From NCBI RefSeq assembly GCF_902459465.1, contig NC_047079.1, forward strand, positions 7,874,001 to 7,938,000: a DNA stretch of 64,000 nucleotides, in the 5' to 3' direction. This DNA comes from Asterias rubens. Its lineage: Eukaryota. Both the position numbers and the translations under genes were made by a program. Positions 27,001 to 54,100 of this stretch are shown piece after piece; position 1 is the first letter of the stretch; every line of letters begins with the position of its first letter. The notes beneath the pieces were generated by a model. It had not been told where the DNA came from, ran no database searches, and worked only from the letters and a program-made list of their open reading frames with translations.

Positions 27001-30000
27001 GACTTCAGTCTAAGGTGGGATTCCAACCTGGGCGCCACAGATATAGATGATGGAAGAAACCCCCTAAGGTGGAAAACCCTTACAATGTGATAGGGACTGA
27101 AACCCAACCCACATGCAAGACTTCAGTCTAAGGTGGGATTCCAACCTGGGCGCCACAGATATAGATGATGGAAGAAACCCCCCCAAGGTGGAAAACCCTT
27201 ACAATGTGATAGGGACTGAAACCCAACCCACATGCAAGACTTCAGTCTAAGGTTGGATTCCAACCTGGGCGCCACAGATATAGATGATGGAAGAAACCCC
27301 CTAAGGTGGAAAACCCTTACAATGTGATAGGGACTGAAACCCAATCCACGTGAAAGACTTCAGTCTAAGTTGGGATTCCAACCTGGGCGCCACAGATATG
27401 AAAGGCAGGTAAGGAGACCACTGAGCCAACCTGGGCCCAATAGTTTTCAGTGTCAGTAATCAATTAATTATTATTATTACTATTATTATTTATTCGGCAT
27501 GTAAACACGTTTAAACATATACAGTACAAAACAAAAGCCAGGGACATATGCCTGGAATTAAAAAAGTTTACTTAAAAACTGTAACCCGAGGGCCTTCAAT
27601 TATAATATCCCTGGCCATATATTAAAATTACAAATGACTTCAATATGAACAGTTTATCTTCACACTCACGAACACCAGACAAATTTTCTGACCTTAAAAC
27701 TCACAAACTTCAGCTGGCAGCACAAAGAAAATTTGTTACCTGAAAGAGTTTAAAACACTAAAAAACATCTTTAAAATCTTTTGACGGAGCTCTTACAATG
27801 AAGTTTAACAAAACTCTTACCGCATTTATTCCTGACAGTTGCTGTGACAACTGCATGACAATACTGATCAACAGAGGGCGCCGTAATGAGCTGCGTTTGA
27901 AAAGTTGCCAGACGCTGACACGTTCCTCTTTCTGTTCTTCTGCATGCTCTCTCCTCATCTCAGCAATCTCATCTTGGATATCGGAATGACGTCGCAACCA
28001 AACAAGAGCTGGAAATAAAATAATAATAATTGAAACTGAGTACAGGTCATTATTTAATCACTGGGGCCAAACTCTTTAGAACAAAAACATTACTGAGCAC
28101 AAAAACAATTGTGATTACCATAACTAGGTTATCAGCCAAATTTATGTGTCACATACACCATTTGCGGCTGGTATTCCGTTCATCAGGTCAATTAACAACA
28201 TATATTGCATTGCCCAGATGATAATTACTATTAAAGTAAAAACATTCAAAGAAACTCGCTGTAGTCCAGCATGCTTAGACCAAACTTCAAAAATTTGGGT
28301 CTAGAATTCCTCAAGGTGTTTAAAATAACCAGGGAGAACCTTGTGTTTTTTTCCTACCTTTTTCAGCTTCCTTTTGCTTGTTCTTGTTGATTAACAAATA
28401 TCTTGGGCTCTCTGGACAGAACGGCATGGTTACCAGCTGAATTATAGCTGGTATTATTGCAGCACCCAAACACAAAGGCCAAAGGTCATCAGTGCCTGCC
28501 ATACATCAAAGAATAAAATACTATTGACAAAAGGATACATTTTTGGAATTGCTCGTTTACTTGTGATTTACATTTTAAAATAAGTGTGTGGGTTTGCTTG
28601 AATTGGTTAATCACTGACCAATGACCAAAATGGATGTCAGCGAAAACAACCCTGATTGCGTTGCGGCAAAACAATGGGGGTTGTTTTCGAAGGAACCAAT
28701 TTGGTTATTAGCCAGTATTTAACCAACTCAAGCAAAAACCACACAGTTATTTTGCCATTTGATAACAATAACAACCATTTGCAATACATGGCTACAGGCC
28801 TATATATGGCTGGTTTCTTTATTACAAAAGTACACCCAAATACACCTCAGTACTGTTGCAATTAGACTTGATATCTAGACGCATGTAAGCTTTTAGTCAA
28901 ATGTAGAGCCAGGTACATGACTCAACTTTGGAATTATGTGCTTACAATCACAACTCCTTATAGGGTTAGCGCCAAACTTTTATACAAGTTTTTACTTGTG
29001 TATTAAGCAAAGAATGCTTTGTACACACTCACCCAAGCAAAAGTAGCTGAGCTTTTAAAAAAAGCTGATTTTTCATTTACAAGAAGTAGAGCCATGGGCC
29101 CAATTTCATTAAGTCTGTAAGCAAAAAAGCTTAATAAGCACATAATAAGCACAGACAATTACTGATTAATAACAGCAGCAGGTTACCAGCCACAATAACG
29201 TTAATTTTACATTGTTTGTGACTGGTCCCCCACTCAATTTTTGCATAACAAAGAAATGTGTCAAGCAGTGTTTTCTGCTTAGCAGCTTTATGAAATTGGG
29301 ATTGGACCCTGGTTTGTAGTTTACCTAAGAGAACAGGAAGACCAAGAACCTGTGATAGTAAAATACCAACAGTCACACCCAGTTGGTTCATCACGCTGAT
29401 TGCACCACGTAGATTGAACGGAGACGATTCAGATAGGTACATTGGCACAATACCAGTGTTGATGCCTGTGGGAAAACAAACATTGAAAAAATTTGTTTAA
29501 GAAAACTAATGTTGGAAAAGACTACAAATTTCAAGCCAATGTAGATAAGACACCAAAAAAACAAACATTCGATTATGATTTAATTTGCATTTGGTAATCC
29601 AACAGGGGGTTTTGTTTCGTATAGTCTTATGTAATTTGTATTTGTATTTTTAATGTCTATTTTGTAACTGCTCATTTCTTACTCCGTGAAATAAAAAATG
29701 AAACATTCACTCATCAAGGACACAAACATAGCAGTCTATTTAGCATGTTAAGTGTCCTTTTGGGTACAGATATTGATAACGTTACAGGAATATTGTACGT
29801 GGGATGAGTTGAACCGCAGTAGACATATTGAGTCCTTTATGGTTGACTCAAGCGTAGCTCAGTGAGAAGCAAGGACAAACAGTGTCATGGTTCAATTACT
29901 CTGAATGCAATGACAATGTCATACCTCAAGGGACCACTAAGCAAATATCAAAATGCCTCTTTATGTATAATAGTAATAATAATAATAATAATAGTTATAA

Positions 30001-33000
30001 TAATAATAATAACCGTATTAATAGAGCGCCTTTTGCAAAGGATACAAAGCTTTAGGGAGAAGGCGACCAAAAGCCTAAAAGAGAACGTTCTTCTTATCGT
30101 GTCCACACACTAGCTGTTGTGTTTCAGCCAGGACTGAACACAACTTCTTGCAATATCATTATACTCTGCAAGGTCTTCAATTCTGCAGTTCTGAGAGATC
30201 AAGTGTGGTTTTCAAAATCCTTTCTGTGCCTTGAACACCCAGCAGGGTGGATACGTAAGTCTTATTATTATTATTATTATTATTACAATAACAGCACAGC
30301 CACCCATTGGGTTTTGAGGCATTGTACTTTGTCAAAACGCCTCTTTACAATGTATTGTATGAACTGCTGTATTATTATTGTATTGAGTTACGGCATTTTC
30401 TAACCTTCACCTTTATAAACATCTGCATACAGTTTGATTCTGTTGTCGACTGCAGTAGGAAATTGATTATAAATGCTTTACAAGTGGTTTTGCATAACAT
30501 CATAATTAGATTTATAGAAATTTGCCTCAGGTATAAAGAATATTAATTTTGGTTTTACCCATTACCCAGCAAACTGAGTAAACAGCGCTAACTCACATGG
30601 ATGATCATGTATATGGGTATAACCACCATTAATATAAGAATCAAAGTCCAACAGTTTGGGCGTTGAGGTGTGTTGTGGGATTAGAGTGAGATAGGACCCT
30701 GTGAGTGATTGGGGTGTTTTGTTTTGGATGTTTTGTGTTGGATGTTTTATTTGTGATGTTTTGTTTGTAATGTTTTGTTTGTGATGTTTTGTTTGTGATG
30801 TTTTGTTTGTGATGTTTTGTTTGTGATGTTTTGTTTGTGGTGTTTTGTTTGTGGTGTTTTGTTTGTGATGTTTTGTTTGTGATGTTGTGTTTGTGATGTT
30901 TTGTTTGGGATGTTTTGTTTTAGATGTTTTGTTTGTGATGTTTTGTTTGAGATGTTTTGTTTGTGATGTTTTGTTTGTGATGTTTTGTTTGTGATGTTTT
31001 GTTTGTGATGTTTTGTTTTGGATGTTTTGTTTGTGATGTTTTGTTTGTGATGTTTTGTTTGTGGTGTTTTGTTTGTGATGTTTTGTTTGTGATGTTTTGT
31101 TTGTGATGTTTTGTTTGTGATGTTTTGTTTTGGATGTTTTGTTTGTGATGTTTTGTTTGGGATGTTTTGTTTGTGATGTTTTGTTTGTGATGTTTTGTTT
31201 GTGATGTTTTGTTTGGGATGTTTTGTTTGGGATGTTTTGTTTGGGATGTTTTGTTTGGGATGTTTTGTTTGTGATGTTTTGTTTGTGATGTTTTGTTTGT
31301 GATGTTTTGTTTGTGATGTTTTATTTGTGATGTTTTGTTTGTGATGTTTTGTTTGGGATGTTTTGTTTGTGATGTTTTGTTTGTGATGTTTTGTTTGTGA
31401 TGTTCTGTTTTGGATGTTTACTGACCACAATTGATTCCCACGATGATTCTTCCAATAATGAGCATCTCATAAGACGAAGCTAACTGACTGAAACCCATCA
31501 GTAGAGCGGCTAGTACAGCTAAGACATTATTCATCAATAAACTGCCTTTCCTAAAATAGAAAGAACCAAAACAACGATTTTATTTCACAAACCAACAATT
31601 CCAATAAACCAGGGAACTGACAATAAAAGGAAGGTCTATAAACTCTTCACATGAGTATTTAAATTAGTCACATGATTTTGGGACACATTAAAAAAAAAAA
31701 AAAAATTGTTGCACAAGTAAAAATTCTTGGCTTATCGCCAGTTTGTGATCATGTGATAATCTTGATCAGATAAAGCTTGTATTTAACAAGCTGTGCACGA
31801 TGGATTTAGATGAAGGTACCCTTTATTTACTGGTGCTACCAGCTAGCATTGCCCCACGCTACACTGTCACGCACAGCTATGATGGACATTTTAATACACT
31901 CAAGCCTGCAATAGTTGATAAACCAATTAGCATTGCACCAGCCTGCAAATTCATCATTGAAGTCTTTTACACATCAACCAGGAAAGAGAAAAGTCTCGAG
32001 ATTAATGTAATATTTATAAATAACTATTTCCAAATAACCAGGTGTGATATTTAGTTCATCAAAAAAAAACAGTAAGAACATTTTGTTGAGGGACCTACCT
32101 TCCAAATCTATCTGCCATAGAACCAGCAGTTAAGGATCCGATCATCCCACCAACTGCAAAAATGGCCACAGTTGTCGCAAAAAGAAACTCATTTCTATCA
32201 TCCGGCATAAAAGAACCGGTCCGTCTGTATTCCGTTTCATTGAAGAAGCTTTGAATGATCTGAATAACAAAAAGTGATAAATCTCAATTAAGTGATAAAT
32301 CTTAACTCAGAAAGTTCATGAGTAAAATAACAATAACATTCACTTGAAAAAAATATATTTTTCTTCATCTCTGAAATCAACTAAAGCATGGAATAAGTTA
32401 ACCGTAAAAAATGACTCAGCAAAATAACATAAAGTTGAACATTTTAGTTTCTAAGCAGCTTAAAGAAACTGTGCCCAGTTGGAGGTGCAGTAAAGGTTTA
32501 AATCAGCCTATAATCTCTGTTGACATGCCATTTTGAGATAAGGTGGACACAGCACTGTGGTCCACTATTAGGCCAAATAAAAACAAATACCAGTTGATCG
32601 TCCGGATTTTGTCAAAAAAGAGGAGGATGAGGACCTTATTATTTATTATTTACTATTTTTTTTTCAAGATGGCCGCTTATTAAACAGGCCACCAATTCTT
32701 CAATTTGAATCAACCGCAAACTTATTTTATACATATTTGTTGCATGAGGACCTGTGTGAACTATTAACAGGGTCGGATTACTCTAAAAAGATTTGCTGGT
32801 AAGCATTCACTAATATTGTTTTATGAAACAGACGGTTACAAGTGTTCGAGAGCATCACAAAGATGGATTTAAAATAAAAAAAGGATGCGGGCGGGGACGA
32901 TCAACTGGTATTTTTTTTTATTTGGCCTAGGCTTGGGTAAATCTGTCTGTATACACCCAAACCAAACAGTGCACTCATTTAGTGTCCACCATCGGCCTAA

Positions 33001-35908: not shown

Positions 35909-36156
35909 TTATCACTAGTATTAGTAATAAGCACGGCGGGCAGAACATAACGGAAGATGATGCGTGACTCCGCTGAAAAACCATCACGTGTGTTTGGTTT
36001 GATAACATAGCGCTAGGTTCAAAGGTCAGCATAGATTTGGCACAAGAAGTCAGTGATCGATGGTGTGCGCCCTCATATGGTACGATTAAACCAATCGTTT
36101 ACTACAGCAAATCAGGGGGTAGACTGGGGCTCCTGTCTTTATGTTCAGGCTAACCA

Positions 36157-38068
36157 GGGGATGACTTTGTAAGGGGGTGCCTTTGTATGGGGGTGACTTT
36201 GTAAGGGGTGACTTTGTAAGGGGGTGACTTTGTAAGTGGGGTGACTTTGTAAGGGGTGACTTTGTAAGGGGTGCCTTTGATGTTTGTAAGGGGGCGACTT
36301 TGTCAGGGGTGCCTTTGATGTTTGTAAGGGGGTGACTTTGTCAGGGGGGGGGTAACTTTGTAAGGGGGTGACTATGTCAGGGGGTGACTTTGTCAAGAGG
36401 TGACTTTGTCAGGGGGTGACTTGGTAAGGGGTGACTTTCTAAGGGGGTGACTTTGTCAGGGGATGACTTTGTAGGGGGTGACTTTGTAAGGCGTGACTTT
36501 GTGAGGGGGTGACTTTGTAAGGGGGTGACTTTGTCAGGGGGTGACTTTGTCAGGGGTTGACTTTGTCAGGGGGTGACTTTGTCAGGGGGTGACTTGGTAA
36601 GGGGTGACTTTGAAAGGGGCGACTTTCTAAGGGGGTGACTTTGTCAGGGGATGACTTTGTAGGGGGTGACTTTGTAAGGCGTGACTTTGTCAGGGGATGA
36701 CTTCGTAGGGGGTGACTGTGTAAGGGGGTGACTTTGTCAAGAGGTGACTTTGTCAGAGGGTGACTTGGTAAGGGGTGACTTTCTAAGGGGGTGACTTTGT
36801 CAGGGGATGACTTTGTAGGGGGTGACTTTGTAAGGCGTGACTTTGTGAGGGGGTGACTTTGTAAGGGGGTGACTTTGTCAGGGGGTGACTTTGTCAGGGG
36901 GTGACTTTGTCATGGGGTGACTTTGTCAGAGGGTGACTTTGTCAGGGGGTGACTTTGTCAGGGGTGACTTGGTAAGGGGTGACTTTGAAAGGGGTGACTT
37001 TCTAAGGGGGTGACTTTGTCAGGGGATGACTTTGTAGGGGGTGACTTTGTAAGGCGTGACTTTGTCGGGGGATGACTTCGTAGGGGGTGACTGTGTAAGG
37101 GGTGACTTTGTCAGGGGGGGGGTAACTTTGTAAGGGGGTGACTATTTCAGGGGGTGACTTTGTCAAGAGGTGACTTTGTCAGGGGGTGACTTGGTAAGGG
37201 GTGACTTTCTAAGGGGGTGACTTTGTCAGGGGATGACTTTGTAGGGGGTGACTTTGTAAGGCGTGACTTTGTGAGGGGGTGACTTTGTAAGGGGGTGACT
37301 TTGTCAGGGGGTGACTTTGTCAGGGGTTGACTTTGTCAGGGGGTGACTTTGTCAGAGGGTGACTTTGTCAGGGGGTGACTTTGTCAGGGGGTGACTTGGT
37401 AAGGGGTGACTTTGAAAGGGGCGACTTTCTAAGGGGGTGACTTTGTCAGGGGATGACTTGTAGGGGGTGACTTTGTAAGGCGTGACTTTGTCAGGGGATG
37501 ACTTCGTAGGGGGTGACTGTGTAAGGGGGTGACTTTGTCAAGAGGTGACTTTGTCAGAGGGTGACTTGGTAAGGGGTGACTTTCTAAGGGGGTGACTTTG
37601 TCAGGGGATGACTTTGTAGGGGGTGACTTTGTAAGGCGTGACTTTGTGAGGGGGTGACTTTGTAAGGGGGTGACTTTGTCAGGGGGTGACTTTGTCAGGG
37701 GGTGACTTTGTCATGGGGTGACTTTGTCAGAGGGTGACTTTGTCAGGGGGTGACTTTGTCAGGGGTGACTTGGTAAGGGGTGTCTTTGAAAGGGGTGACT
37801 TTCTAAGGGGGTGACTTTGTCAGGGGATGACTTTGTAGGGGGTGACTTTGTAAGGCGTGACTTTGTCGGGGGATGACTTCGTAGGGGGTGACTGTGTAAG
37901 GGGTGACTTTGTCAGGGGATGACTTCGTAGGGAAGGGGTGACTTTGAAAGGGGTGACTTTCTAAGGGGGTGACTTTGTCAGGGGATGACTTCGTAGGGGG
38001 TGACTTTGTAAGGGGTGACTTTGTCAGGGGATGAACTCGTAGGGGGTGACTTTGTAAGGGGTGACTTT
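36157..38068. repeat. G-rich minisatellite (GGGGTGACTTTGT[AC]A, 15-16 bp), about 1.9 kb, with about 770-bp higher-order period
   Basis: More than 100 monomers; the rare variant ggtaactttg recurs at 36351 and 37121. Confidence 0.95.
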
Positions 38069-39636
38069 AATCCTATAAGGATCACCTTGCCCATTTTTCA
38101 TTAACCACAAACACACATTGACTCAACCTTCAAATAAAGACAATGAACAATTAGTTAGAAAGTTTCTTGAAAAAGATTTGTTTGAACAAAATCACTGTAT
38201 AGTTATACCACTTTCCAATATAAAAATAATATGATGAACATAATTAAAATAAAAATAAAAGGTAAGCACCTTTGCTTTTTAAAGAATACACAGATTAATA
38301 AACAATGTAAAATAACGACCTTTAAACTACGGTTGCATTTCCAAATGCATTTATAATCTAATGCATTAATTAATGCAAAATAAAGTCAGATGTTTAGCAT
38401 TTATATGTTTCTTATAAATGAACACAAAAAACGCAACATAGGGAGCTGTCATTAATTTCACTGTCATACAAAAAGTATTACGGGGAGAGCGAAGGAGACC
38501 ACAACTAAAAAGTTGTGTAAAGAATGTTGATTTTTAATGTGCATTTATTTTGAATTTATTTTTGATGGAGTCTACTTTGGGGAGGGGGTGGGTTACTTTG
38601 GGGAGGGGAGGGGTGTCCTTAGAAGTAGGACTCTCTGTCTGATCAAAATATCTGAAAATTTTGGAAGCTTTGGTCTCTAAATATAAACTATATACTCTAG
38701 ATATAAAAATATACATATAACAAAACATCTGTTTTGATGCAGTTTTTCCCACAGGGTTTAATTAAAACAATTAGAACAATTTTCAACTTGTAAAACTTCA
38801 GAAGCCAAAAATGCATCAAACGAATAGTTTTACAAAAAAATCCCAAAATGATTAAATATAATGAAATTATATATGAAAATATATAAATAAATATACCCTA
38901 CTCTTAGCTCAATCATAGAGAGAGAACCACTGAAAGAGTTATAACGTCCCAGCATCAAATGAGCAATGATCACCGCCGCCAGCACCAGTTCGTTAACAGC
39001 CATGGTTGCTTCTTTGCATGCAATACTTAGTTATTCAAAGTATGCCCCACTTTCTAAACAAATTCTGAAAAGAACATTCGAACAAATGTCTCCGTTGGCC
39101 ACAGCTGGCCATCGATCAGAGATGGTTCATCATTTACTAGAAATCCTGCCGGTTTAATATAACATCTTTCTGAACGTAGGAATCCATAGGAAATTGTTTT
39201 ATGAAAGGAACATTCAATTGCATGGTTACTCATGGCTTGACAGCATCAACCATGGCCGTCCCAGCAAATCAATGACGGCAATCATTATATACATTACAAG
39301 GGCAGACAGCACATGAAAGCAGCTGGCGATGACAATGCATTTTCTAAGGGACAAGTTTAGGTTGACGGTCTGTGGGTTTTTGTTTTAACTCCTTCTGTGG
39401 TCCTTTCCCTATGGTTCATTTCACTTGATACTGCAGGTAGACATTAAAAATGCACAAGATAAAAAAATATATACTTAATATAAATTAACACATCCAACAC
39501 CACACAAACAGTTAACAATATCAAGTTGCATAAACTGGAAAAAGTTATCTAGTAAAATACTACCACATAAAGCATTGCCTCTGTGGAAAGTATAACGAGT
39601 TGTTCAGAAATCAAACTAACTTTTCTTAAACTTACG

Positions 39637-42600
39637 TTAGTTCTGACTGTCTCTTTTGCTTTTCTTTTGACGCCTTCTTTTCATAGATGCTTCACCTTTT
39701 CCCTGATAATTTTTCTGTCCCTTAAGATTTTCAGCAAAAGAAGTTGTTCCTGTTGCTTTGCTGTGGTCTGCTCCAACATGAGCAGTTTGATTGGCAGATT
39801 GGAAGTCGTGTGACAGTGTTGAAACCATCTGATTGGATGGGGTAGCTGTTGACTGTAATGACCATCCAATTAAATCGTGATTGGTTTTAGGATGGTGGTA
39901 AGGTTGTTTTGGACCATTCTGATTGGCTGAGGTAAACTGCTGTGACTCTGTTGATGGCGCAAAGCCAGCTGCTAAACCAGGATTGGTTGAAGGTCGGTGG
40001 TGTGATCGTTTTGGACCATTCTGATTGGCTAATGTAAAGTGCCGTGACTCTGTTGATAGCGCAAAGCCAGCTGCTAAACCAGGATTGGTTGAAGGTCGTT
40101 GGTGTGATCGTTTTGGACCATTCTGATTGGCTGATGTAAAGTGACACGACTCTGTTGATGGCGCACAGCCAGCTGCTAAACCAGGATTGGCTGAAGGTCG
40201 GTGGTGTGATTGTTTTGGACCATTCTGATTGGCTGAGGTACAGTAGCGTGACTCTGTTGGTGAATGATTAGAAAGGGCAAATTGTTTCGAACGACAACGT
40301 TTTGAGCCGGAGGATGAGCTGTAATTGGTTGACTGTGAATGATGCGACTGACTTGAGAACATCTGGTTGGATAAAGCTGAGTGGTGCATTTTTGATGACG
40401 AGGAACTGTGAGATGATGTAGAACAGAATGCTCTCGCTGAGGAATTTTGGTTGGCTGATGCAATGATGAACGTCTCGGATGAATCTTTCTGATTGGATGA
40501 CTTAAAACGAGACAGTGTGCTTGATGCCATCTGATTGGTCAACAAAGTTATATCCTCAGTATTTGATTGGCTGTCTGATGCAGACACTGGCAGTTCCTTT
40601 TGACACTCCTCTGTAAAAGAAATGAAATTACTTATTTTTATTAAGTAATTAAATATACTTTTTCTATAACAGTGTCTAGAGAGATCAATATTTTCCCAAG
40701 TAGCTAACCGAACACGATTTCACAGAACTGCTTAGCACTATGGTAAGCAGAAACAGATTGCCATTGCTATTACCATACTTCCACTCAAAATGCTATATCA
40801 TGGGTGAGGTTATGCTAGCTAACTAGCGGTTGACTGAGTAAATAAACTAGTTAGACAACCTGTTCTGCAGATTAGCTCTATGAGTCCTTTAGGTTTGAAG
40901 GGATATGATATTTGCCTTAATTTTCAGAATATGAAAGACTGGGGCTTTGAGAAGTGTGGAAAATAAGAAGGAACTATATTTAGTAAACTTGAGGGTACAA
41001 AAGTGTGTGAATCGTTTCAGAGAGTTGTAATGGCTGTGAGAAGAACCAGTGTGGTCTTGACATAAACAGTATACGCTGCTCGTCTTTAGGAGAAAGAAGA
41101 CAAGCAGAGTATGCTTATGGAAACGTCAAGTTCACATCAGCTCCGAGTCTTTTCAGAGCCAACAATCCTCCCAAACAGAGATTGTACACATGGTTGTGTG
41201 CTCAAGTGTACAAGTTGAAAACAACAAAAACAACAAGCAAATTACTCGGGTGGGATTCGAACCCACGACCCTTGCAATTCTATAGCAGTGTCTTACCAAC
41301 TAGACCACCGAACTGCCTCTAGCTCCTGGGCAATCTCGGTGGTCTAGTTGGTAAGACACTGTTCTAGTACCTTACTGTTAGGAAGTTTGAATGTTTTGTT
41401 GACAAACCTTTTATTTCTGTGACTTCTTCAAACAGCCATTCCTTACTGGTATCTTGGAATGGATTGACACCAGGTAGACCCTTTTGAAGTGTGGTTGTTG
41501 GGCGATAGGTTTGGACCATGGTGAAACTGTCTAGTAACTCTTCATTCTCATCAAGACATTGGTACTCAGGCTCGGATGTAATCTCCCAGTCTGCGTCGCT
41601 GTCAGTGTCTTCAAGCGGTGTGATTGGTTGATCAGCGTCGTAGTTGGTTGCATTGAGTGCTGTGATTGGTTGAAAGGCGATGAGTGAAACAATTGTTGTT
41701 TAAAAGGCTTTAGGTACTTTTTGTAGGACAGAAAACATTAAACTACACAGTTTGAAGGTAACCTAGAAGGTAATGATGGTAGAAAGCTCCCTTTAAAATG
41801 AGATTTGCTGAAGTGCTGTAGTTTTTGAGAAATGAGTAATAATCAAGTCACACAAAAATTTGTTTACAGTTAAACACTCACCATTCTGTATTTCACCACT
41901 ATCACCATATTGACCTTCAACCTCAACGCCATGTAGTCTTCCAACATCCTGGCTGTTATCCATCATTGCCTTGTGAGATTCCCAGTCAGTTTTAGAGTCC
42001 CATATGTCAGAAAGATTTATCTGCAACAAATTCGCTGGAACCTTCCACTGGTTGTCTGGGGGGTCGATCAAAGAGCAGATACAGGGGGGCAATACGTTGG
42101 CCACTCGCAGCATAAAATGGCGCCCTCTTGCATCAGTCAGGTGGTAATATTTTGCGTGGGGCATGTTAGACTTGATCCGTACCTTGTACTTGTTGGAAAC
42201 AGGGGAGAAAAAACACTAAATGTCAATTTGTGCACTGAATCTTGCTTATTCCTGCTGATCCTTTGTATACCAATTTCATATCTGATTACTGTCTACAAAA
42301 CTAGACCAGGAGTATAAGTGCAAATAATAACTATGGTAAGCATGTAAACACTGCTTCGCCTAAAATGTGCATTACACTTAAACACAAAGGATCATTGACT
42401 CTCAAACACTTTCAAGCCAATGTAGGCTGCTAAGCACTTCACTTCCAAAAATACACATACTGATGTAGAACAAAGAGAATACATTGAATTACCAAACAAA
42501 GGTTAATAAATAGGTTTTGGGGTCTCTTAATATGAATTATATAGTCGGCAAAGCGTCCCAATGGAAACATCACACCAACTTGTTTTGTAGAGAAGTCAAT

Positions 42601-45600
42601 GAAGAAATACCAGTTTTAGACAAGGGAGGAAAACCCCTACAGAAAAAATCCACAGAGTAAAAAATACAATCCACCTGCAAGGGTTTGGTCTGATTAGGTG
42701 GGATTTGAACGAGGGTCCACAGAGGTGAAAGGCAGGGACAGAAACCACCGAGCCATCCTGACTGCCTAAGAATGATTTGATAATCTAGTAAGGTTTGTGG
42801 TGACGCCTTGCACATAAACACTCACTCTCTCCTCAAGATATATATTGTGGCTCTGAAAAGAACCTGTTGTTAAACAACTCAATGTTTTATGATTCTCTGG
42901 TCTGTTTCTTACCTCTCTAGAACCATCTTGTTCCAGATTCATTTCATCAAGCCTGTAAGTAATTCTTCTTGCTGCACCAGTTTTAATGTCCATGTCTCGT
43001 AGCTCCTGCTGGAAATGATGCAGTGACCCGCATGATGTGAAGAGATCAATCAGACGGGACCAGTTGTAGCCATGCTTCAAAAGATGTTTGACTGTAAGCT
43101 TGCGTTGAAGACCGACAACAGAGGCTGGTAAATTCTCTGAAAAGTAAAATGTTACAAGCAGTATTTATCATGGGTGTTGGCGTCATGTGAATTGGTTTAA
43201 TAGTAACTGAGCACATATCTGTCAATATTAAAGACACCCAAGGCGCACAAAGACAAAATGATTGGTTACAATTAAAAGAAAACTTGACACGGATTTTTAA
43301 CGAATGTTTGAACAAATTTGTCTTTAAACTGGACTTGAAGCACTGAAGTGATGTAAATGTGCAAAGATCTCTTGGGAGAGTGTTCCAAACTTGTGGAGCA
43401 GCCACGCAGAATTAACCTGTATCAATCTAATCTTTTTTTCTTTTTTTTTGTGGAAGCTCAGATAGCTAGGTTGGAGCTTGTATCATCATACTCTGTCTCC
43501 CACCACTCTCTGTCAATGATCCACACTCACCTTCAAGATCAACTTTATCTTCTCTGTAGTATTTTTCTCCCTCGTAGAACTCAATCCTGAAACATTGACA
43601 AATATTTCTATGAAAAAACATATAAAGTCAGGCCTCAAAATAACCCACAGCAATTGCAGTGATGCCCAATGCTTTTGCTGTGGTGCCCTTTGCAAAGTTC
43701 CAATACAAACTTAAATTGTCCTCATTGAAGAGCCCCTTACCAGAGGAAAATTGCTGCGCCCCTTCAAGATGAAATTCAAGGCCTGTAACGTAATACACCA
43801 TGAGAGACACTGCCCAGTACACTTTAATACATTTTTGATTGAATAAAGACAACTTGACTAGAGTAGGACTTGAACGTACCTGTGTTCAAAGGATTACTGT
43901 GCCAGTGCTCTATCAATTGAGCCATACAACCCTAAAGTTGGCAGTTCAAATCATGCTCTTCTAAATTTTTTCTTTTTTCAACCAAATTTTTTATAAATGA
44001 CCATTTAACTCCGCTCTTACTGATTTTAAAGGGTTGATTTGAACTGAAATCAAGGTGAGGAAGCATTTACCACTCATTTGTGTTGTAGATGGGTGTCCGA
44101 TACAGCAACCAATGAAGGCTGCACTGCGTATATAACTTCACAACGAGGGAGCCCCGGCTTCTGGAGTCCAGCAAATCTAAAGATTAAACCCAATTACCAC
44201 GAGGACTTTGACAAAATGTTTTAAAAACAACAACCTCTTCAGAATATTGTGAAATCAAAAGTGTCCTGAAATGGGAGAAGCTGGGACACAGCTTTGCCAT
44301 AAGACCAGACCATTAAGTTATGCCTCTAGAACACAGATCTATCACCAGCAACAATTGTCTGCTTACCCAATACAATCTAATGTAAGAACCACAAGGGAAA
44401 CATCTTGAAGTGATCCCTCTCCTACCATTTCTCAAGTTGTATCAGAAACTTGCAAGCCTCGACATAAACCACAAGACCAACAGCAATTGCCATTGCCCCA
44501 GGTGCTTTTGCTGCGATGACCTCTGCAAGGTTCTAATAGAAACTTACATTTGCCCCAAAGAAGTGCCCCTTACCAGAGAAGTGCCCCTTACCAGAGGAAA
44601 AATGCTGTCCCCTTCAAGAGCGAAGTTCAAAGCCTGAACTTGTTTGTGATCCCTGCTAGTCAAAGGTCCAGCCTTAGTTCCATTCATTGACCAGAAAGGC
44701 TCAAGTCTAAAAGACGTGATTCAAGTCTGGGCAAAGATTTAATACAAATACTGCTTCAGAGCAAAATAGTATGAATAATTGGTAACCTTGATATACATAC
44801 CTTGATTAGTAAATTGTGCAGGGAACCAGTCATTAAGCAGAGAACCTAGTCCAAAAGAACGTGACTGTAAAAGCAACGGGTGTTTAGCATCTTTGTACTA
44901 AAACACAACAGGATGCAAAAAGAGCAAATTATCAAGTTTTATTTCATACAAAATTTACTATTCTTGAAGAAGTCAGATAGTGAAAAGGCATGAACTAGGA
45001 GTACAGCATTGCAGTTAATGCACAGAATAGATAAGATAGTACGACACTTGCAGCCGATTTCACAAAACGCTAGGATTAATCCTATCTCGAGTTAAGACAA
45101 GTAACCCGTCCTAACTTAGAATGGGTTCAATGCGTCCTACGCCGTTGGATACGGAATTTATCATCTCCTAAGTCCTAAGATTAATCCTAATAAGTTAGGA
45201 AGTGTTTGGTGAAATCGACGGCTGGTCTCAAACTCCAGTCACATTTCTTAGGCCTCTGGGATCAGACTTTGACTTGAGGATAAGGAAATCAGGATTAAGG
45301 ATTAATAAGTGGCAGAGAAATCTGGGATAGGGTTACCTGCTTAAGGATGGGTAAGGGATCAGCATAATGAATGTTATGTGTCTCCAGGGTGGTTCTTGGG
45401 TCTATGTCATAGCTTTCCAACATTCGGAAAAAAAAGAGAAATTGAAACGTCTCTCCGCCTTGAGCAAACAAAACTATATTTTGGGGTTAGGGGAAAAAGA
45501 TGAGAAACAAAAAGAAAGATTAAAATGTTTCTGCTCTGAAGAATGAAACTGTGGGTTAGAAGTTAAAAAACGGTACATTAGAAATAAACAATAATATCAA

Positions 45601-47325
45601 ACCAAAGTTACTGAGGAAAAGTAATGCCACAGCAGTTGTGAAGTCAGTTTCATGCAAGGTGAAAAAGCATCTTCCAGTAAAATGAAAATAAATTCAAGCA
45701 ATTAAACAAGAGCTGTTCATGCACAAAATCAGCAGAACATATGGTCCACCATTTTGTGGGGTCAACAATTTGGTTCCACAAAAAATGTGAATCATGTTCT
45801 GTCATAAATAGCACACTAACCTTAATACCATTTCAATGGATATTTAGACCTGTGTGAATCATTATACTACACTTTTAAAGCATCTTTCCAACCATGTGAA
45901 TTTCATAGACAACGCTTTTTATAGCCCCAAGCACTCAACCTGAAGGCAACCTGCTGCCCCTTTAGAGCAATGTACAAGTGTGGTTTGAACAGGTGCGAGA
46001 CTTGCACAACCTATAGGGCACCCTCACTTGGTGGTTAAACAGTGTAGCTCATTTTGCCAATCCTCTTTATACAGCGTGCACAGTTTTTCTTTATGTCATC
46101 AGTGTTTTTCTTTTAAGATAGAGGATGGCGTGAATACGTGTTGTAGATTTGAAGACCTGTAGCCGATTTCACAAAACCCTAGGATTAATCCTATCTTGAG
46201 TTAGGACGAGTAACTCGTTAGTAAGGACGAGTAATCCGTCTTAACTAAGGATGGATTCAATGCATCCTAATGTCTACGGTTATGGAACTGAACTGGTCCT
46301 TAATCCTCGGATTAATCCTAAGTTAGGATGAGTTTGATGAAATAGACGGCAGTTTTGTCAGTTTCTGGTCTTGGTCTCTGACTATTGGGTCTTGACTACA
46401 ACACTGGTGAATACATAGGTACTCAGCTTTAGCATCCTTAATTCGAGACACAGGTTGTTTCCTAAAAGAAAAATACCAAAATGTCTTTATTTCTGTTACA
46501 TACCTGGATAAAGATTCAATGCAAGCTCAGAGTTTGCTGTTTCTGTCGTGTCATTGATCCATTTCAGTAAGTTAGAAATGACAGTTTCTGCTGTGGAATT
46601 TATTCCACTTTTGCCAAATCTTGGAGCCATGCTTTGCTGTGTGGATTCTTTCTCTAGAAAAAGTAATTAAAAAAAAGAGAGATAATATTATATAAAAATA
46701 CAGAGTCAGGACTACAGCAAAAATACATCCCACAACAGGCAATTTCCCACTGAAAATGTACCAGCAAATTGACATTCTATCAGAGTTAAAGGCTACTTTC
46801 TCCTAGAACTATAAGGTTCAATGCACTATCATCTCCACATGGATAAGATAGTGAATCAAACCTCATAGTCCTAGGAGGAAGGCTACCTATACTTTGATTT
46901 TATACTGTCCCAATAAATGGAGAGGCCTTAGACTTTGCTCTTGAAGGGGTACAGCAATTTCCCTCTGGTAATGCACACTTCTATTAGGAAAGTGTAAATT
47001 TGTAATGGAACTTTGTAAAGGGCATCACTTTCAGCAATAAGCGGATAATCTTCCGGACGTCGCCATGGCACCCCGTGATTGCTGATGGGTGCAATGGGTT
47101 AAACTCATAGTAGTTAGTATGCAACATTACCAACTTACTGCAGTTGTGATGGATTCTACTATAGAACATCGGGGCATCTTCTTTGTAGGGCCAGCAATGC
47201 ACAGCGATGTCCATTACTTTATGTCTCATGAAATTGGTTCCAGACGTCTTACAGGAGAAGAAGAAGAACAGCGGCATTGTCTTGTCATCATTTCTTGCCT
47301 CACAATCTTCTTGTTTGGAATCCAT
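39637..47325 (-). CDS. Uncharacterised protein, about 833 aa: inactive DEDDh exonuclease-like domain + Exuperantia-like helical (SAM-like) domain + unknown domain + disordered repeat tail
   Basis: Exons (minus strand): 47325-47139, 46653-46504, 45458-45337, 44897-44801, 44176-44071, 43586-43531, 43136-42913, 42852-42826, 42188-41882, 41659-41408, 40610-39637. All GT-AG, phases chain into a 2502-nt ORF. The domain call comes from motif resemblance by eye (FFSCKTSG, NLLKWIND, GGETFQFLFFFRML, ADPLPILK, SFGLGSLL, KHGYNWSRLIDLF). The gene model is more secure than the domain call. Confidence 0.8.
39895..40262 (-). repeat. Coding tandem repeat, 102 bp (34 aa) x about 3.5
   Basis: ggaccattctgattggct at 39911, 40013, 40115 and 40217; encodes TSANQNGPKRSHHRPSTNPGLAAGFAPSTESRHF-like units. 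Confidence 0.9.
41240..41361. mobile_element. tRNA-derived SINE head (minus strand) plus an inverted partial head
   Basis: Minus strand GGTGGTCTAGTTGGTAAG...GGTTCGAATCCC; perfect 26-bp inverted arms at 41286-41311 and 41336-41361. Confidence 0.8.
42600..42765 (-). mobile_element. tRNA-derived SINE
   Basis: Minus strand GGATGGCTCGGTGG (A box) and CGTTCAAATCCC (B box); body similar to the unit of the 26543-27438 array. Confidence 0.7.
43200..43410 (-). mobile_element. 3' end of an L2/CR1-clade LINE
   Basis: Translates as AAPQVWNTLPRDL..FTSLQCFKSSLKTNLF, typical of the ORF2 C-terminus, followed by a short 3' tail. Confidence 0.75.
43625..43785 (-). repeat. Interspersed repeat copy (unclassified family)
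   Basis: caggccttgaatttcatcttgaaggggcgcagcaattttcctctggtaagggg...; diverged copies at about 44470-44638 (-), 46925-47035 (+) and 33020-33170 (+). Confidence 0.7.
45051..45224. mobile_element. MITE
   Basis: CAGCCGATTTCACAAAAC ... GTGAAATCGACGGCTG with internal GGATTAATCC palindromes; a second copy lies at 46160-46352. Confidence 0.8.
46160..46352. mobile_element. MITE, same family as 45051-45224
   Basis: tagccgatttcacaaaaccctaggattaatcctatc ... ggattaatcctaagttaggatgagtttgatgaaatagacggcag. Confidence 0.8.
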
Positions 47326-47899
47326 CTTGAGCTTCTAGGGAATTATTGTAAGTTATTTTACTCATAAAATAAAAAAGTTTTGAAATCCCTCTAAAAAAGT
47401 CTTAGCGAAGCCTACAAAAAACAAAGCTAAGTAATTATAAAGCCAGGGTAGTTGAATTCCAAAGACGGGAGGAGGGTTCTGCTTAATATCACAACTTAAT
47501 AGTAAATAAAGGGCAATGCATTTATAAACATATTATAATTATAGGTCAGGATAGGTCACCCCCTTTAACTTAACCCTACCAGAGTACCATGCAAAAGTTT
47601 GCAGTTCTATATTGGTACAGTGAATGATATATAGAACTAAACATGCTTAATAAATCAAAACGAAACCAGCTGGTATCGTAGGCCTACTAAAACTACTGCT
47701 ACTGTAGTAGAGTAGTAGTACAACTTAACAAGCAATGATGATGCATTGAATTGATGATTGTTTTTAGTGAAATTAGTCTATTTGTATTTATTTATATTTA
47801 GAAAGACCTGAGATTGTGAGAAAGACGCTACATCTCGTGTAGCATTTTGCTATGCTTAACATAATAACAAGGGGAAATTATTCACTGCAAACAAAAAGC

Positions 47900-48127
47900 T
47901 ACCTCATTATATCATCAGGGGCCAGGAATGTCTCAATCAAAAGTACCCCTTTGCACGAAAACCTCTCTCTTCTATTTCACCGCAAAAATAGAATCGCCAG
48001 GGGACGATCGTGTGTTCTTTTCGCTCGAGTCGAGGGGCCAGGGATTGAAGGTCAGAGTTCAATTCGGGTCATCATCAATACTTTGTTGCACTTTGCGCTG
48101 GCATCATCCGCACAGGACGGATACAAA
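47900..48127. promoter_or_regulatory. Probable bidirectional promoter between the pseudo-exonuclease gene and LPCAT3
   Basis: Divergent start codons at 47325 (-) and 48128 (+). A minus-strand acceptor at 47335 and candidate donor at 47902 imply a non-coding first exon for gene 3. Locally CpG-rich, extending to about 48420. Confidence 0.6.
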
Positions 48128-51100
48128 ATGGCACAAGAAACCGCCGAAATGTCCGGTGTTTTCTCTGGAATATCTGGGAAACTTGGTATTGATGAAAGTA
48201 GCTTGCTCTACTTGTTGACCATCTTTTCATGTAAGTCACTACGTTTGCTAGTTGTATTTATTTCTCGTTTCCATTTATAATCATGATTGGTTGTCATACC
48301 CGGCCGTGCTCTCGAGACTCAATGCACATACACACGTACACCGGGCCGGCTGGGCCGGGCCGGGCCGCGTACACACCCACGGCACAGCCGGCGGACGAAC
48401 GGACGGAGTGCGGGGTATTAATCACAGCAGGGGGGTTCACATGGGTTTGATAGCCCTATACTATAATATAGGACTCTTTCTCTGTACACAGATACAGAGT
48501 CCTAACTAGTATCCTGGTGTTATTTCTTTTCAGTAGGATAACAGGAATATTGTTCACAATCAAAAACTGAATGTGGTTTTTTTTTCAAATCATCTATCAA
48601 ATTGTTTAACAAAAACACGTATCCTCTGCTTACCAGTTTTCACGCTATTATGCCTTTTTCTTTGAATTGGGAAAAAAATAATGATGCCATATATCAACCG
48701 ATGCCCTAATTATCTTCGTTTGTTAATATTAAGTATGCAAACATGTATTAAAACTTGATGGACATTGAAATGTTCACACCACACCAATCTTCGATGACTT
48801 CAACTGGCCCCATTGTTTTGAGTTTTTCCTGTTTTCACGGCAAACGAGAAAGTATGGTTTCCCGGTGAAGCCATACATGGAAGAAACATCTGCAGTGACT
48901 ACAAGTGTTCTTTGAGACTCTGTGTATGGCTGTATAGCCAGCAGTTGCCTTCATTTTATTCAAAATATTTTTTTTAAATAATTTTTTTAAATTACCATGG
49001 AAACTTGAAAAAATAAAAAAATAAAAAAAATATAAAAAGTGTGAATAATTACTGGCTTCCAAATCTGATTTTTATATTTTTTTTAATATATATTTTTCTT
49101 CTTAATATTTATAATAAAGCGTATAAATAAACAGTGATAATTGAATCAACAAGCTGATGTTTAAATTTTAATATTAATAATAGTATTGATACGAGGGTTA
49201 CAAAATAAAAATCTCCAAAAATATTAGAAAATGATATAAGAAGGCACATAGCTTCTTTAAGCCTCTGGATATTTTTTTTAAAGAATGCTCAGCAAAACAT
49301 TCAGTCACATGATTTTGATCATCATGAATTGTGAATTGAAATAGCGTTTGATGAAACTTTTTCGGTGGGCAAATGTTTTTATATGGCCTCAACATTATGA
49401 CATATTTTTGTACCTTGCAGAAAGGCCTAAAGTACCAAACTTTTTGCATTTACAAGTGCAAATGACCAGTGGAGCCTTACGTGTTTCTAAGTTTTGGTCA
49501 AGGGAGAGGAGACTCTTTGCTTGGCAAATAAAACCACACAATTTTTATCTAGGGCCTGTTTACATCGCGCACAGAGAGGAAAAAGATTTGCCACGATTTT
49601 AGGGACACCTCGAAAACAGGACCTCCTACGATACACTTCATTGCGTGTTGACATTTTTAAAGTTTTGGTTTTACAAATGTTGTTTTTTATTGTCATTTTC
49701 AGGTTATCCTTTGATGTATATTTCCAGAACCTACTTGCATGGCCAGTCACCAATGATAAAACATATCTACTTCATTGCCTGTAGCCTCACACTGGCTTTC
49801 TGTAACTTTGGTAAGACCAGAATGTTTATTTTTAGAGGCACGAGAAGTATCTATTTTACGTCAAGTACAACCCTCACCATTTTTCAACTTTTTTAACCGT
49901 GTACGTTTTGATGAATTGTATATTTATTGAAATCATTTTTATATATAAGATTTTTTTTACTAAATCTGAGTCTTGTGCATATAAACGTTACTTGTGCAGA
50001 GCAGAAAGTTTATTGTTATATGCCATTTCCTCCTTCAAGAATCATAAAAGCGAAGAAGGCCCTATCAGAAAACAGCTCACACTGATTTATTGTGTCTTGA
50101 ACATTTTATTTGCTTTTTGTTTTTTTAATTATTGATTTATTCCTTCAGGATTTGACATCATCTACTCGCTCATCTCAGTCTTACTGAACTACGCTCTGCT
50201 TGTTACTGTTGGAGGAAGTTCACTCTCAGTGGCTGTGTCATTTGCCCTCAATATGGTGAGTTTATAACCCCTCTTCTAACAAGGAAACTTTCAAATTCAT
50301 TGGAAACCTTCTTACCCATTAAATGATGTCACTGGTCTTAGTTTAGAATAATTAAAGTACATGTACATGTAGACTCATATGTCAACAGACATACATTACG
50401 ATTTAACGACAGAATGTCTGTAAGTATGTATAGATAATCCTTAGCAACCCTTTAGCAACAGTCGTAGTCATAGCCACCAAGAAATGTCTTGCTGTATTAA
50501 TCTTACCTCAAATCACATTTTAGTTTAATTTGTATTCCAGGGTTATCTTCTTTCAGCCTACATTCTTGTATCCACTGATGGTTATGACATCAACTGGACA
50601 ACACCTCACTGTATCCTGACCCTAAGGATGATCAGCGTGGCCTTTGACCTTTACGATGGCAAGAGGGATGAGGTAAATATGTAGGGTCAAATGACATAAA
50701 CTTGGGTAGATTTTATAAAGAGATATTTTCAGATGAGTTTACTATCACCATAGTGAGCTGTATTGTTACATCATGCATCTCTTCTCAAGAGTGATCTTAG
50801 CTTTTTGTGAGCTTGTGCCCTGCGTATTAAAGCATTAATAAATACTGATTGGAACTCTTTCATAAAAGGGTATTGGGGCTTTCAGACCAATCAGCACTTT
50901 CAGCCTCATTTTGGCGACATTGACTTGATTGTGGCAAAACAAGATGGCCGCACAATGATTTTGGTGTCAAAGCTATTTACTGTACATTTAAGTGTACTTC
51001 CTCATTGTCACCAATCCTCCACACACTTGAGGATAAGTTTATACATGAAGTATGATTTGTACTCGCATAACTCACATAGCAACATTGCTTCCAATTGTTT

Positions 51101-54100
51101 CTCAAAAAGGCAAATCTCAGTTCCGAGCAAAAATCATTGAACATCAAGATGACCCCATCACTCTTGGAGCTTGCTGGCTTCACCTACTTCACTGGTGGAT
51201 TCTTTGCTGGTCCCCAGTTCTCAATCCGACGCTATCTTGAATTCACTGAAGAGAAACTTCTAGATAATGACAAGGGAGAGTTGCCTAATTGCATTGGACC
51301 TGCAATGAACCGATTTGCAGTTGGTGTTGTGTATGCAGTATTGGAAACCATCCTAACACCAATGTTTAGCAATGCTTATTTACTATCAGAAGAGTTTGCT
51401 GTAAGTATAATTAAAAGTTTTTATTATAATATTTTTATTTATTTGTCATGGATAAGTTTTTTTCTTTTTTTCTTATCTTTACACCAATGTAAAAGTACTG
51501 CATACTTTGGTTCTTTTCAGAGTTCTGTGAAAAAAAGAACCCTTGGCAAATCACTCGCTCGGGATTCAAACCTACAACATTTGCTCTAGCAATGCAAAGG
51601 TCATGGGTTTGAATCCCACCCAAGTGATTTGCCAGTGGTTTTTCACATAACTTGGGAATGTACAGTATACAGTATACAGTGCTTAGTACACATCAGTGTA
51701 AGGGTCAAAACCAAGTTGTAAATATTTTAACAAACATTCAATTGTGATGAAGGAACAAGTGTGCAAGTGAGATCAATGTTAAGATTTAATCTGAGTTTCA
51801 CAAGGGTTGAGGTATTTGATTTTTTTATGTAATAAACCCTACTCATTTTCATGATTACTCTGTCATTTGTTTTGAGTTTCGACACTAGAGATATTATTTG
51901 TATTAAAACAGAAATACAAAAATGAAGTTAAAATAATTTTGTTTTCACATTGTATTCCTTTTTTTAGGCTTCATCTTTCCTGTATCAGATGTTTGCTGTT
52001 GTCATGTGGCATAAAGCAGTGTTCTTCAAGTACTGCACTGTCTTCCTGTTTGTTGTAAGATTACATCATTTCTTGAATTTTGTGATTTTCAATTTATGCA
52101 TCACTATGCTGTTCATGTGCTGTGAGATGTTTGGAGGGGGGTTGGGGGGGGGGGGTTTGAAACTGGACAATTTGTTCATTGTTTCCTAATCATACTGTTA
52201 CTATTGTGGGTGATTTTGGACGTGTATAGAAATAAAAAACAATAAAAAAGATATTAGTACATAAAATATACAAATCAAATAAATTAATATACAAACAAAT
52301 TTTAATAAAGTGGTTGTTAAATCTTATTGTTAAACAATAATACACATTACCCAAAACCAACACTAAGTTGAATTTTGTTCTTAACCAATCATCATTTCTA
52401 GGAAGGTGCTTGCATAATGAGCGGTCTAGCTTACAACGGCAAAGACAAAGAGGGAAATGCATTGTGGGATGCCTGTGCCAGCATAAAGCCGCAAATGCTA
52501 GAAACTGCTACAAGTACAGCTCAGTACATCAAAGCCTTCAATTTATCAACAAACACTTGGGTTGGAAGGTGAGTTCTTTAAGTTACGGTTAAAAGTCTAA
52601 AGAATGTTATGATGGGAAAGGTTGGGGTTGATTCGTTTTATTTTCTTATAATAGCAAACCAATGGTCGATGTATTGCAAGAAGCGGATCAGCAGATGATT
52701 TGTAAAGTTGTTTTAAAAAATGAAAAGTGCCCAACACAAAAAGCGGCCACTCGAAGTGAGGGCTTCAAGATAAAAATAGTTTATAAAGGGAGAAGATATC
52801 TGTGCACATTTCTTTCCAACGTAAATAGATTGTAAGATGGTGGAAAACAAGACACAAGGTAGGAATTCTAAAGTGCAGCAGTATAAGGAAAAGTTTGGCT
52901 AACTCCTTTTTTCTTCAATTACAAATTTGAAGATGTCTCTGTAAGTGTGTTGTCTTTAGTTACAAGCCATTTCTGGTGGTCGAGTGGAAGGACATCTGCT
53001 CTAAAATTGCAAAGGATGTGGGTTCAAATCCCACCCAAGTAATGTGCCTGTGGATGTTTATTGACACAACTTGGGAGAAAGAACTGAGTATACAGTGCTT
53101 AACACACATCTATGCATGCTTAAAAACACAAATAATATTGAATCAAATCTTTTTCCTTTAGATACGTCTTCAAGCGTCTGAAGTTTCTGAACAATCGTTA
53201 CATCTCTCAGACAGCAGCCGTCATGTTCTTAGCTGTATGGCATGGAATGTACATTGGATACTACATTTGTTTTGGTCTGGAGATATTCATCACAACGTGC
53301 GAGTTGTTTGTAAGTTTTTTGAAATCTACAAAATTCCATCCTATAAAAAGGATCTTACACATTTCTTGTTAGTTTAATTATTTCCTGTAGCTCAAACGCA
53401 TGTTGTTAGACCTAAACGGCTTTGGCTGTGGTGATTTGATGCATCAAGACCAAACACCCAGTCTCAAAAAGTACAACAACATAAGATGGTGGTGAAATGA
53501 TCTTAAATTATACAATTAATTCTGTGTATTATACAAGTTTGCTTATGCTCTCTGCATACTAATTGAGTTTTTACAGTCAATGTAGTAAATATCATAATTT
53601 GTTATACCCTAGCTGCGGCGTTACGTAAAAAAAACTTGTTTACACTCAATCAAAACAATTTTAAAAGATGTCAAGTAATCAACTAGGTGATGATTAAATA
53701 TTACTCTTTGAATTCTCCAGGTACAAGATGCAGTGAAGCGAAGCCCTCCCTTTGCCAAGTTCGTGAACAACCCAACCCTTAAACTACCTCTCTTTATACT
53801 TCTCAAGTTTACCGCTTCATTATCCGTTGGTTACCCTCTTGTTGCCTTTGTCCTGCTGCGCTGGAGGAGAATACGATTGGTAAGTTAAAATAAGATCAAT
53901 GTGGCATAGCAGTACTTTTCCTGTCCCATTGTGATTCCTGGTTCAAATGCAACCTTTGACTTGACATGTGGAATTGTTATTCAATTCCTGACTGTGGGGT
54001 TGACCCATCAGGAAGTGTAACTATTGCAGCTAAAACTCAACTTGTTATCTTCTTTTCCTATATATCCTCTAGCCATGTGACCTCAACAGCACCTTGTAAA

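Follow-up and report, generated by a model that had tools for sequence, protein, structure and literature searches.

Gene organisation and transcripts

The sequence analysed here, hereafter referred to as the window, is a 64,000-nucleotide stretch of the genome of the sea star Asterias rubens (contig NC_047079.1, positions 7,874,001 to 7,938,000 of the forward strand). Its minus strand harbours a multi-exon gene, LOC117302330, which consists of ten coding exons distributed over positions 47325-39640 and at least one upstream exon of the 5' untranslated region (5'UTR), and which is predicted to encode an exonuclease-like (EXO) domain followed by a SAM-like helical bundle. The gene model was derived from GT/AG sites and reading frames, using the six-frame translation of 39000-48000 and the minus-strand sequence, where short open pieces bordered by AG and GT sites were seen. 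The joined exons form an open reading frame (ORF) of 829 amino acids with no internal stops, terminated by TAA at 39639-39637. An earlier interpretation made from the letters alone (the sequence-only reading) had proposed 11 exons and an ORF of about 833 amino acids. The gene was indeed found at those coordinates, the 11 exons being the ten coding ones plus the 5'UTR exon, while the length of the ORF had to be corrected to 829 amino acids (817 in RefSeq isoform X2). The spliced product contains every one of the motifs quoted in that reading (FFSCKTSG, ADPLPILK, SFGLGSLL, DLLDSRSRG and RKLTVKHLLKHGYNWSRLIDLF).

RNA contigs of four public runs were placed on positions 41350-47349. The junction of exons 9 and 8 is backed by contig X1 record 1, that of exons 8 and 7 by X1 record 2 and X5 record 20, and both ends of exon 2 by RNA contigs as well (X5 record 25). 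The 1436-nt contig X3 record 15 traverses exons 9, 8, 7 and 5, and its unplaced letters fit the length of exon 6 together with parts of exons 10 and 4. Contig X1 record 6 covers 47192-47336; since it runs 120 unplaced letters past 47336, an upstream non-coding 5'UTR exon is inferred, giving 11 exons in all. The depth of RNA contigs over the exons is low (∼5–15) and some of the contigs are unspliced. Nevertheless, the gene is transcribed and spliced, and most of the junctions, for which the sequence-only reading had suggested a check against RNA, are confirmed by contigs.

Coding exon 1 (47139-47325, amino acids 1-62) begins with the start codon at 47325, is identical to the corresponding part of P0007, the RefSeq isoform described below, and is covered in part by X1 record 6; it encodes the EXO-like strands β1-β3 and the degenerate Exo I motif FFSCKTSG. 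Exon 2 (46504-46653, amino acids 63-112), at the borders of which contigs X5 record 25 and X3 record 19 end (46504 and 46652), comprises most of a poorly conserved insert predicted with low confidence (amino acids 58-83) and then the EXO-like helix α1. The acceptor of exon 3 (45337-45473, amino acids 113-158) had been placed at 45458. However, two contigs (X3 record 18 and X5 record 24) extend to 45475, and the residues VLFAQ are present in P0007 as well as in every orthologue; hence the exon starts at 45473, 15 nt further upstream, which adds VLFAQ in frame. Encoded here are both VLFAQGGETFQFLF, a degenerate version of Exo II in which the catalytic Asp is replaced by Gln123, and ADPLP, a conserved segment. 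Exon 4 (44801-44897, amino acids 159-190) encodes the invariant LGSLLNDW, a counterpart of the SLGSI segment of TREX1, and exon 5 (44071-44176, amino acids 191-225; 44070-44177 in X3 record 15) spans the region where Exo III (H-x4-D) would be expected, which reads DLLDSRSRGSLVV and has neither a conserved His nor a conserved Asp.

The long connector helix (residues 223-246 of the structural model), which joins the EXO-like domain to the SAM-like domain, is encoded by exon 6 (43531-43586, amino acids 226-244), and the SAM-like bundle itself by exon 7 (42913-43136, amino acids 245-319), in which contigs of X3 and X5 show no differences from the window. The first 66 amino acids of exon 8 (41882-42188, amino acids 320-421) constitute a conserved post-SAM element (42188-41991), and the remainder is the start of an acidic linker that continues through exon 9 (41408-41659, amino acids 422-505; X1 record 1). 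Finally, exon 10 (39640-40610, amino acids 506-829, followed by the TAA) encodes a basic, poorly conserved tail rich in Ser, Thr, Asn and Gln. It includes 3.5 tandem copies of a 102-bp (34-amino-acid) unit at 39906-40259 (91% matches, score 596).

Annotation and orthologues

The 829-amino-acid model matches P0007 (RefSeq uncharacterized protein LOC117302330 isoform X2 of A. rubens, 817 amino acids) without mismatches, save for 12 amino acids (36 nt in frame, window 40479-40444) that are present in the window and missing from P0007. Treating this stretch as a canonical intron was considered and rejected, since its ends do not show GT..AG under any shift between -6 and +6. Probably the difference reflects an in-frame indel polymorphism of the low-complexity tail, or else a non-canonical choice in modelling. 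The locus, which had looked unannotated, is therefore annotated in RefSeq as LOC117302330, though under the name 'uncharacterized protein' only.

An exhaustive HMMER search with exon 8 identified a 766-amino-acid protein of Acanthaster planci and two short fragments (154 and 106 amino acids); two further matches were discarded as spurious repeat proteins. Searching with the A. planci protein led to Patiria miniata (809 amino acids), Amphiura filiformis (1023), Holothuria leucospilota (683) and P0007 of A. rubens itself (817). The retrieved orthologues all bear the label uncharacterized or hypothetical, and no Pfam domain is precomputed for any of them. Among the clusters of the AlphaFold database (AFDB), Foldseek detected a further sea-cucumber orthologue, from Apostichopus (37% identity), the next neighbour being amphioxus LOC109466634 (784 amino acids, 19% identity, E 4e-10). 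Three word-indexed searches returned no sea urchin, hemichordate or chordate relative, but they missed the known Apostichopus orthologue too and so do not demonstrate absence.

The orthologues span Asteroidea, Ophiuroidea and Holothuroidea. Intron positions agree in A. rubens, Patiria and, over most of the conserved part, Holothuria. In Amphiura filiformis one uninterrupted exon (L004:12255-12950) corresponds to exons 3-7 of A. rubens, from which it follows that the brittle star lost four introns kept by the sea stars and the sea cucumber. A neighbouring gene is shared as well: in Patiria a Sugar_tr gene comes next after the orthologue on the same strand, and in the window a Sugar_tr transporter exon is located downstream at 29131-29448 (-), likewise on the same strand as the gene. 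The locus is a conserved echinoderm gene, old across three classes.

When A. rubens was compared with the other four species region by region, the SAM-like bundle was found to be the best-conserved part among sea stars (72-75% identity with the other sea stars, 49% with Amphiura and 40% with Holothuria). The EXO-like domain shares 57-59% of its residues with the other sea stars and 39-40% with Amphiura and Holothuria, and the post-SAM element (amino acids 320-385) shares 64-73% with the sea stars, 62% with Amphiura and 38% with Holothuria, whereas the acidic linker and the tail reach only 14-27% across all four species (16-23% for the brittle star and the sea cucumber). Judging by these identities, conservation is domain-specific and apparently under selection, the EXO-like, SAM-like and post-SAM parts being constrained as opposed to the linker and tail.

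EXO-like domain and its degenerate active site

An AlphaFold2 model of residues 1-383, built from an alignment of five sequences, has a predicted local distance difference test (pLDDT) score mostly of 80-93 for residues 15-57 and 84-320. Its elements follow one another as in DnaQ-like nucleases (three strands, one helix, one strand and then helices), and the EXO domain starts at residue 15. In a Foldseek search against the PDB the EXO+SAM structure of Drosophila Exuperantia (Exu, 5l80_A) ranked first (E 5e-5), followed by Plex9.1, a DnaQ domain, TREX2, RNase T and TREX1 (probability 1.00). VIA-align, for which the background Z is stated as ∼7–8, gave a Z of 16.4 for the EXO+SAM part of Exu over model residues 14-311, 15.5 for the EXO domain of Exu alone, 14-15 (up to 15.1) for TREX1/TREX2 and 13.8 for Plex9.1. 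Among the Swiss-Prot AlphaFold models, ranks 1-4 were occupied by Drosophila Exu and ranks 5 and 7 by the C-terminus of mouse and human PML. A language-model (ESM) feature search likewise placed Exu clusters first (0.95, 173 shared features) and PML_C/RNase_T clusters next (0.94). The N-terminus is thus modelled with a DEDDh (DnaQ-like) RNase H-like fold of the TREX1/Plex9 type, and the earlier proposal of a dead DEDDh fold joined to an Exuperantia-like helical domain was returned by all of these structural and language-model approaches.

When the brittle-star orthologue was compared with PDB sequences, all 24 matches were to TREX1, each of them non-significant on its own (E 0.2-1.6). In these HMMER alignments the brittle-star protein is paired with TREX1 at Exo I (FFDMEATG), at Exo II (VAHHGDLYDF versus VAHNGDRYDF) and at the SLGS segment; the motif positions obtained in this way were carried through the orthologue alignment. 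A phmmer search of the PDB with the sea-cucumber N-terminus gave a single match, to WDR43, which was dismissed as chance.

Exo I of A. rubens reads FFSCKTSG, in which Ser24 and Lys26 (Ser24-Cys-Lys26) stand for the catalytic Asp and Glu. At the Asp position, A. rubens and A. planci have Ser, Patiria has Thr, Amphiura Asn and Holothuria Cys, and the Glu position is Lys or Arg in all five species, so the loss of both Exo I carboxylates that had been read from the A. rubens letters extends to every orthologue. In the case of Exo II, the loss of the Asp was read correctly and the sequence was not: instead of LYPGGETFQ, the motif is LYPVLFAQGGETFQ (VLFAQGGETFQ), which fits Exo II better and has Gln123 at the catalytic Asp. 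Gln is found at this position in all three sea stars, and the Asp is kept in Amphiura (LYDF) and Holothuria (SKDF). The Exo III segment DLLDSRSRG and its orthologous versions contain no conserved His or Asp, the exact equivalent positions not being fixed by superposition, and the Asp of ADP(L/V)P is invariant among the five orthologues.

Orthologues with an intact D-E-D-D-H set would have pointed to a decayed copy confined to one species; none of the four has the full set. Because the same Exo I losses occur in five species, the active site was dead already in the common ancestor of these echinoderm classes. According to the aligned residues, the catalytic loss is old, and the brittle star and the sea cucumber still carry a vestige of Exo II.

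SAM-like bundle, post-SAM element, linker and tail

In a separate AlphaFold2 run on residues 240-400, residues 240-318 form a small helical bundle with a pLDDT of 80-90. A wide VIA search with this domain retrieved mostly SAM domains (ASK3, tankyrase, p73, Tric1, BICC1 and others), but also BAF, Sla1 SHD2 and the SAM-like region 269-344 of Exu (Z 6.1), and Foldseek with the helical domain alone found nothing significant (E≥2). The SAM-like label is therefore based on the shape combined with the fact that the bundle follows the EXO domain, as it does in Exu and in PXL, the C-terminal module of human PML-1 (PMC13659232).

The post-SAM element (amino acids 320-385, 66 residues) has a net charge of +4 and many invariant positions, among them K325, R340, G341, R347 and W382. 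No relative was found by Pfam on the exon pieces or by the exhaustive HMMER search with exon 8, and an Atlas look-alike search with residues 315-505 gave a best score of 0.60 and no relative. Its pLDDT is below 50 in both AlphaFold2 models (residues 1-383 and 240-400). The sequence-only reading had spoken of a novel domain here, and residues 320-385 are indeed highly conserved, with no detectable relative or confident fold; the element is either a new small domain beyond the resolution of five sequences or a conserved, extended stretch that acquires its fold on a partner. As a separate observation, the end of the SAM-like bundle together with the post-SAM element (window 41883-42188 (-); positions 296-349 of the five-species alignment A2) aligned with four ribosomal protein S13 sequences (E 0.5-1.8) on LEGDLRREV..IKRLM..YRG..RRG. 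This alignment is non-significant and was treated as chance, a lead only to an RNA-binding segment.

The linker (amino acids 386-505) is acidic, with a net charge of -22 and small conserved islands (W446, TTLxKG..NPF and EWL). The tail (amino acids 506-829), by contrast, carries a net charge of +17 and is composed of Ser, Thr, Asn and Gln to 43%. Its 34-amino-acid repeat unit was not seen in the other species of the orthologue alignment; the repeat tail is lineage-specific.

Repeats and neighbouring sequences

Several repeats reside in the introns of the gene. A tRNA-like sequence (Rfam RF00005, 43.9 bits) at 41242-41314 (-), within intron 9, is probably a tRNA-derived short interspersed element rather than a working tRNA gene. 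Two families of interspersed repeats are represented by direct copies in different introns, one at 45046-45230 and 46155-46315 and the other at 43643-43745 and 44476-44578. The first family reaches an RNA-contig depth of ∼10,000–25,000 and has many joints to other loci, and is therefore regarded as a very abundant transcribed element. In intron 8, a 35-nt stretch (41805-41839) shows a summed RNA-contig depth of up to ∼70,000 in run X1 and loose contig ends on both sides in all runs; it is a fragment common to something extremely abundant.

A G-rich 16/31-nt satellite with ∼120 copies and a strong GC skew occupies 36156-38068, 1.6 kb downstream of the stop codon, and a 14-nt tandem array (30715-31419, 50 copies) gives rise to a spurious repetitive minus-strand ORF of 227 amino acids. 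Upstream of the gene, on the opposite strand, lies an exon of an MBOAT acyltransferase (51095-51589 (+)) and, beyond it, an exon of the beta-lactamase family (60387-60647 (+)).

Comparison with Exuperantia, PML and TREX nucleases

The best structural and language-model match is Exu (PDB 5L80 and 5L7Z; PF22123 Exu_RNase_H_like and PF18609 SAM_Exu), a protein known from arthropods. At the N-terminus, both proteins have a DEDD-type EXO-like domain that lacks the catalytic residues and is directly followed by a SAM-like bundle, and the C-terminal region is long and poorly ordered. The two differ in that their identity is only ∼11–13%, neither of the Exu Pfam models matches the starfish protein, and the domains are oriented differently (root-mean-square deviation of 11 Å over both domains versus 4 Å for the EXO domain alone). 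The echinoderm protein also has, unlike Exu, the conserved 66-residue post-SAM element, the acidic linker and the basic repeat tail. Exu binds RNA via its inactive EXO domain and the SAM-like domain together (PMC5785220), and dimerises through the SAM-like domain and a β-hairpin (PMC13659232).

The PXL module of PML-1 is an EXO+SAM pseudo-exonuclease that shows no nuclease activity in vitro and binds G-rich single strands; it retains a single DEDD residue out of four, holds a phosphate ion in the pseudo-active site and has its EXO domain joined to the SAM-like domain via a long connector helix, an arrangement which, among the structural homologues of PXL, is reported to be found only in Exu (PMC13659232). 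The starfish protein resembles PXL (PML exon 9; PF25244 PML_C) in the succession of EXO domain, connector helix (model residues 223-246) and SAM-like bundle. However, in PML this module is C-terminal to the RING, B-box and coiled-coil, whereas in the starfish it is N-terminal and there is no TRIM part; PF25244 does not match, and none of the four canonical DEDD residues is kept, as compared with one in PXL. With the active DEDDh nucleases TREX1, TREX2 and zebrafish Plex9.1 (PF00929) the protein has the fold in common (Z 13.8-15.1). These enzymes differ from it in their catalytic residues, the starfish protein being without the Exo I Asp and Glu and without a conserved Exo III His or Asp, and the Exo II Asp being lost in sea stars. 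TREX1 and TREX2, moreover, lack the SAM-like domain.

Possible function and origin

Taken together, the data make it fairly probable that LOC117302330 is an echinoderm EXO-SAM pseudo-exonuclease, which most likely binds nucleic acid without cutting it. In the model, a DEDDh 3'-5' exonuclease fold of the TREX1/Plex9 type, devoid of the metal-binding catalytic residues, is connected by the long helix to the SAM-like bundle. By analogy with Exu and PXL, RNA or single-stranded G-rich nucleic acid would be held uncut at the face of the pseudo-active site, and the conserved basic post-SAM element and the basic low-complexity tail may add affinity or bind partners; a germline or maternal role, as the sequence-only reading had put forward, may also be envisaged. 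This nucleic-acid-holding reading is in keeping with the conserved Lys or Arg found in every orthologue instead of the catalytic Glu.

Several results weigh against it. No Pfam family was matched at E≤10 by P0003, five N-terminal regions or the exon pieces; the profile of alignment A2 gave nothing significant and no DEDDh match among PDB sequences in hmmsearch; and in hhalign A2 paired with E. coli DnaQ at a probability of 0.2%, with only helix α1 aligned, albeit in the topologically correct place. Hence, no sequence profile ties the protein to any known family, and the fold comes from a model built on only five sequences. The sequence-only reading had held that a lack of DEDDh matches in profile or structure searches would speak against it; profile searches yielded none, whereas the structure searches gave a clear match. 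The SAM-like label alone is weak, the Z values of the helical domain (≤7.5) being below the decisive level for helical bundles. In addition, neither domain is net basic (EXO -2, SAM +1).

This near-neutral charge of the EXO and SAM regions would suit a protein-protein scaffold, in which the dead EXO-SAM module served as a dimerisation platform or adaptor with no nucleic-acid ligand, and the post-SAM element and NPF-type motifs provided the contacts. The SAM-like bundle and the post-SAM element do rank among the most conserved stretches, protein interactions are often mediated by SAM domains, and Exu forms dimers via its SAM-like domain and a β-hairpin (PMC13659232). Yet nucleic-acid binding is a property of both EXO-SAM pseudo-nucleases characterised so far (PMC13659232, PMC5785220), and the Lys or Arg found for the catalytic Glu in five of five orthologues would suit a phosphate contact, compare the phosphate ion of PXL; a scaffold without such a ligand is considered unlikely. 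Much less credible is an active nuclease with non-canonical catalytic residues. Although the brittle star and the sea cucumber have kept the Exo II Asp, and the Asp of ADP(L/V)P is invariant, none of the five species retains the two Exo I carboxylates that hold both metal ions, and Lys or Arg stands in for one of these; the Exo III His and Asp are not conserved, the Exo II Asp is Gln in the sea stars, and PXL, with a single DEDD residue left out of four, shows no activity in vitro (PMC13659232). As for the idea that the copy has decayed in this species only, be it as a pseudogene or as a paralogue, recently inactivated, of a functional exonuclease, the low RNA-contig depth and the lack of a name in RefSeq might be cited in its favour. 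It is already contradicted by the data and its likelihood is close to nil: the spliced ORF of 829 codons is intact, spliced transcripts exist, intron positions and the neighbouring gene are conserved, conservation is domain-specific, and orthologues in all three classes have the same catalytic-site losses, which in itself means that the copy is not one decayed in a single species.

With regard to its origin, the protein might descend from a domesticated transposon-associated PML_C/RNase_T exonuclease, of the kind that molluscs and cnidarians carry as fusions with Mutator-like transposases, and so be no vertical relative of Exu. In Atlas clusters near the query, PF25244 PML_C, PF00929 and PF20700 Mutator occur in combination, and the AFDB clusters include cnidarian proteins named 'Exonuclease R569' (TM score up to 0.52). 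However, the locus displays no transposase domain, terminal repeat or multi-copy signal, and synteny and intron positions are stable across the classes, which makes a domestication event rather improbable. A vertical alternative, to which we likewise assign only a slight chance, is that the echinoderm protein and amphioxus LOC109466634, its nearest non-echinoderm structural neighbour, represent the deuterostome counterpart of Exuperantia, with the post-SAM element as a lineage-specific new domain for binding nucleic acid or partners. If true, this would date the dead EXO-SAM RNA-binding module to the bilaterian ancestor, as a possible stock of the PXL of PML.

To our knowledge, only two EXO-SAM pseudo-exonucleases have been characterised, namely Exu, with its part in mRNA localisation in fly oocytes, and the PXL of PML-1, which binds G-rich nucleic acid. 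The echinoderm family is a third case, one that is old, constrained and invisible to Pfam. The TREX1-like wording of Exo II in some of its members suggests a stepwise picture, in which an active nuclease of the TREX1/Plex9 type became a binding module, and the conserved post-SAM element is a candidate new domain. Since starfish oocytes are a classical experimental system, a role of this protein in the handling of RNA would be directly testable.

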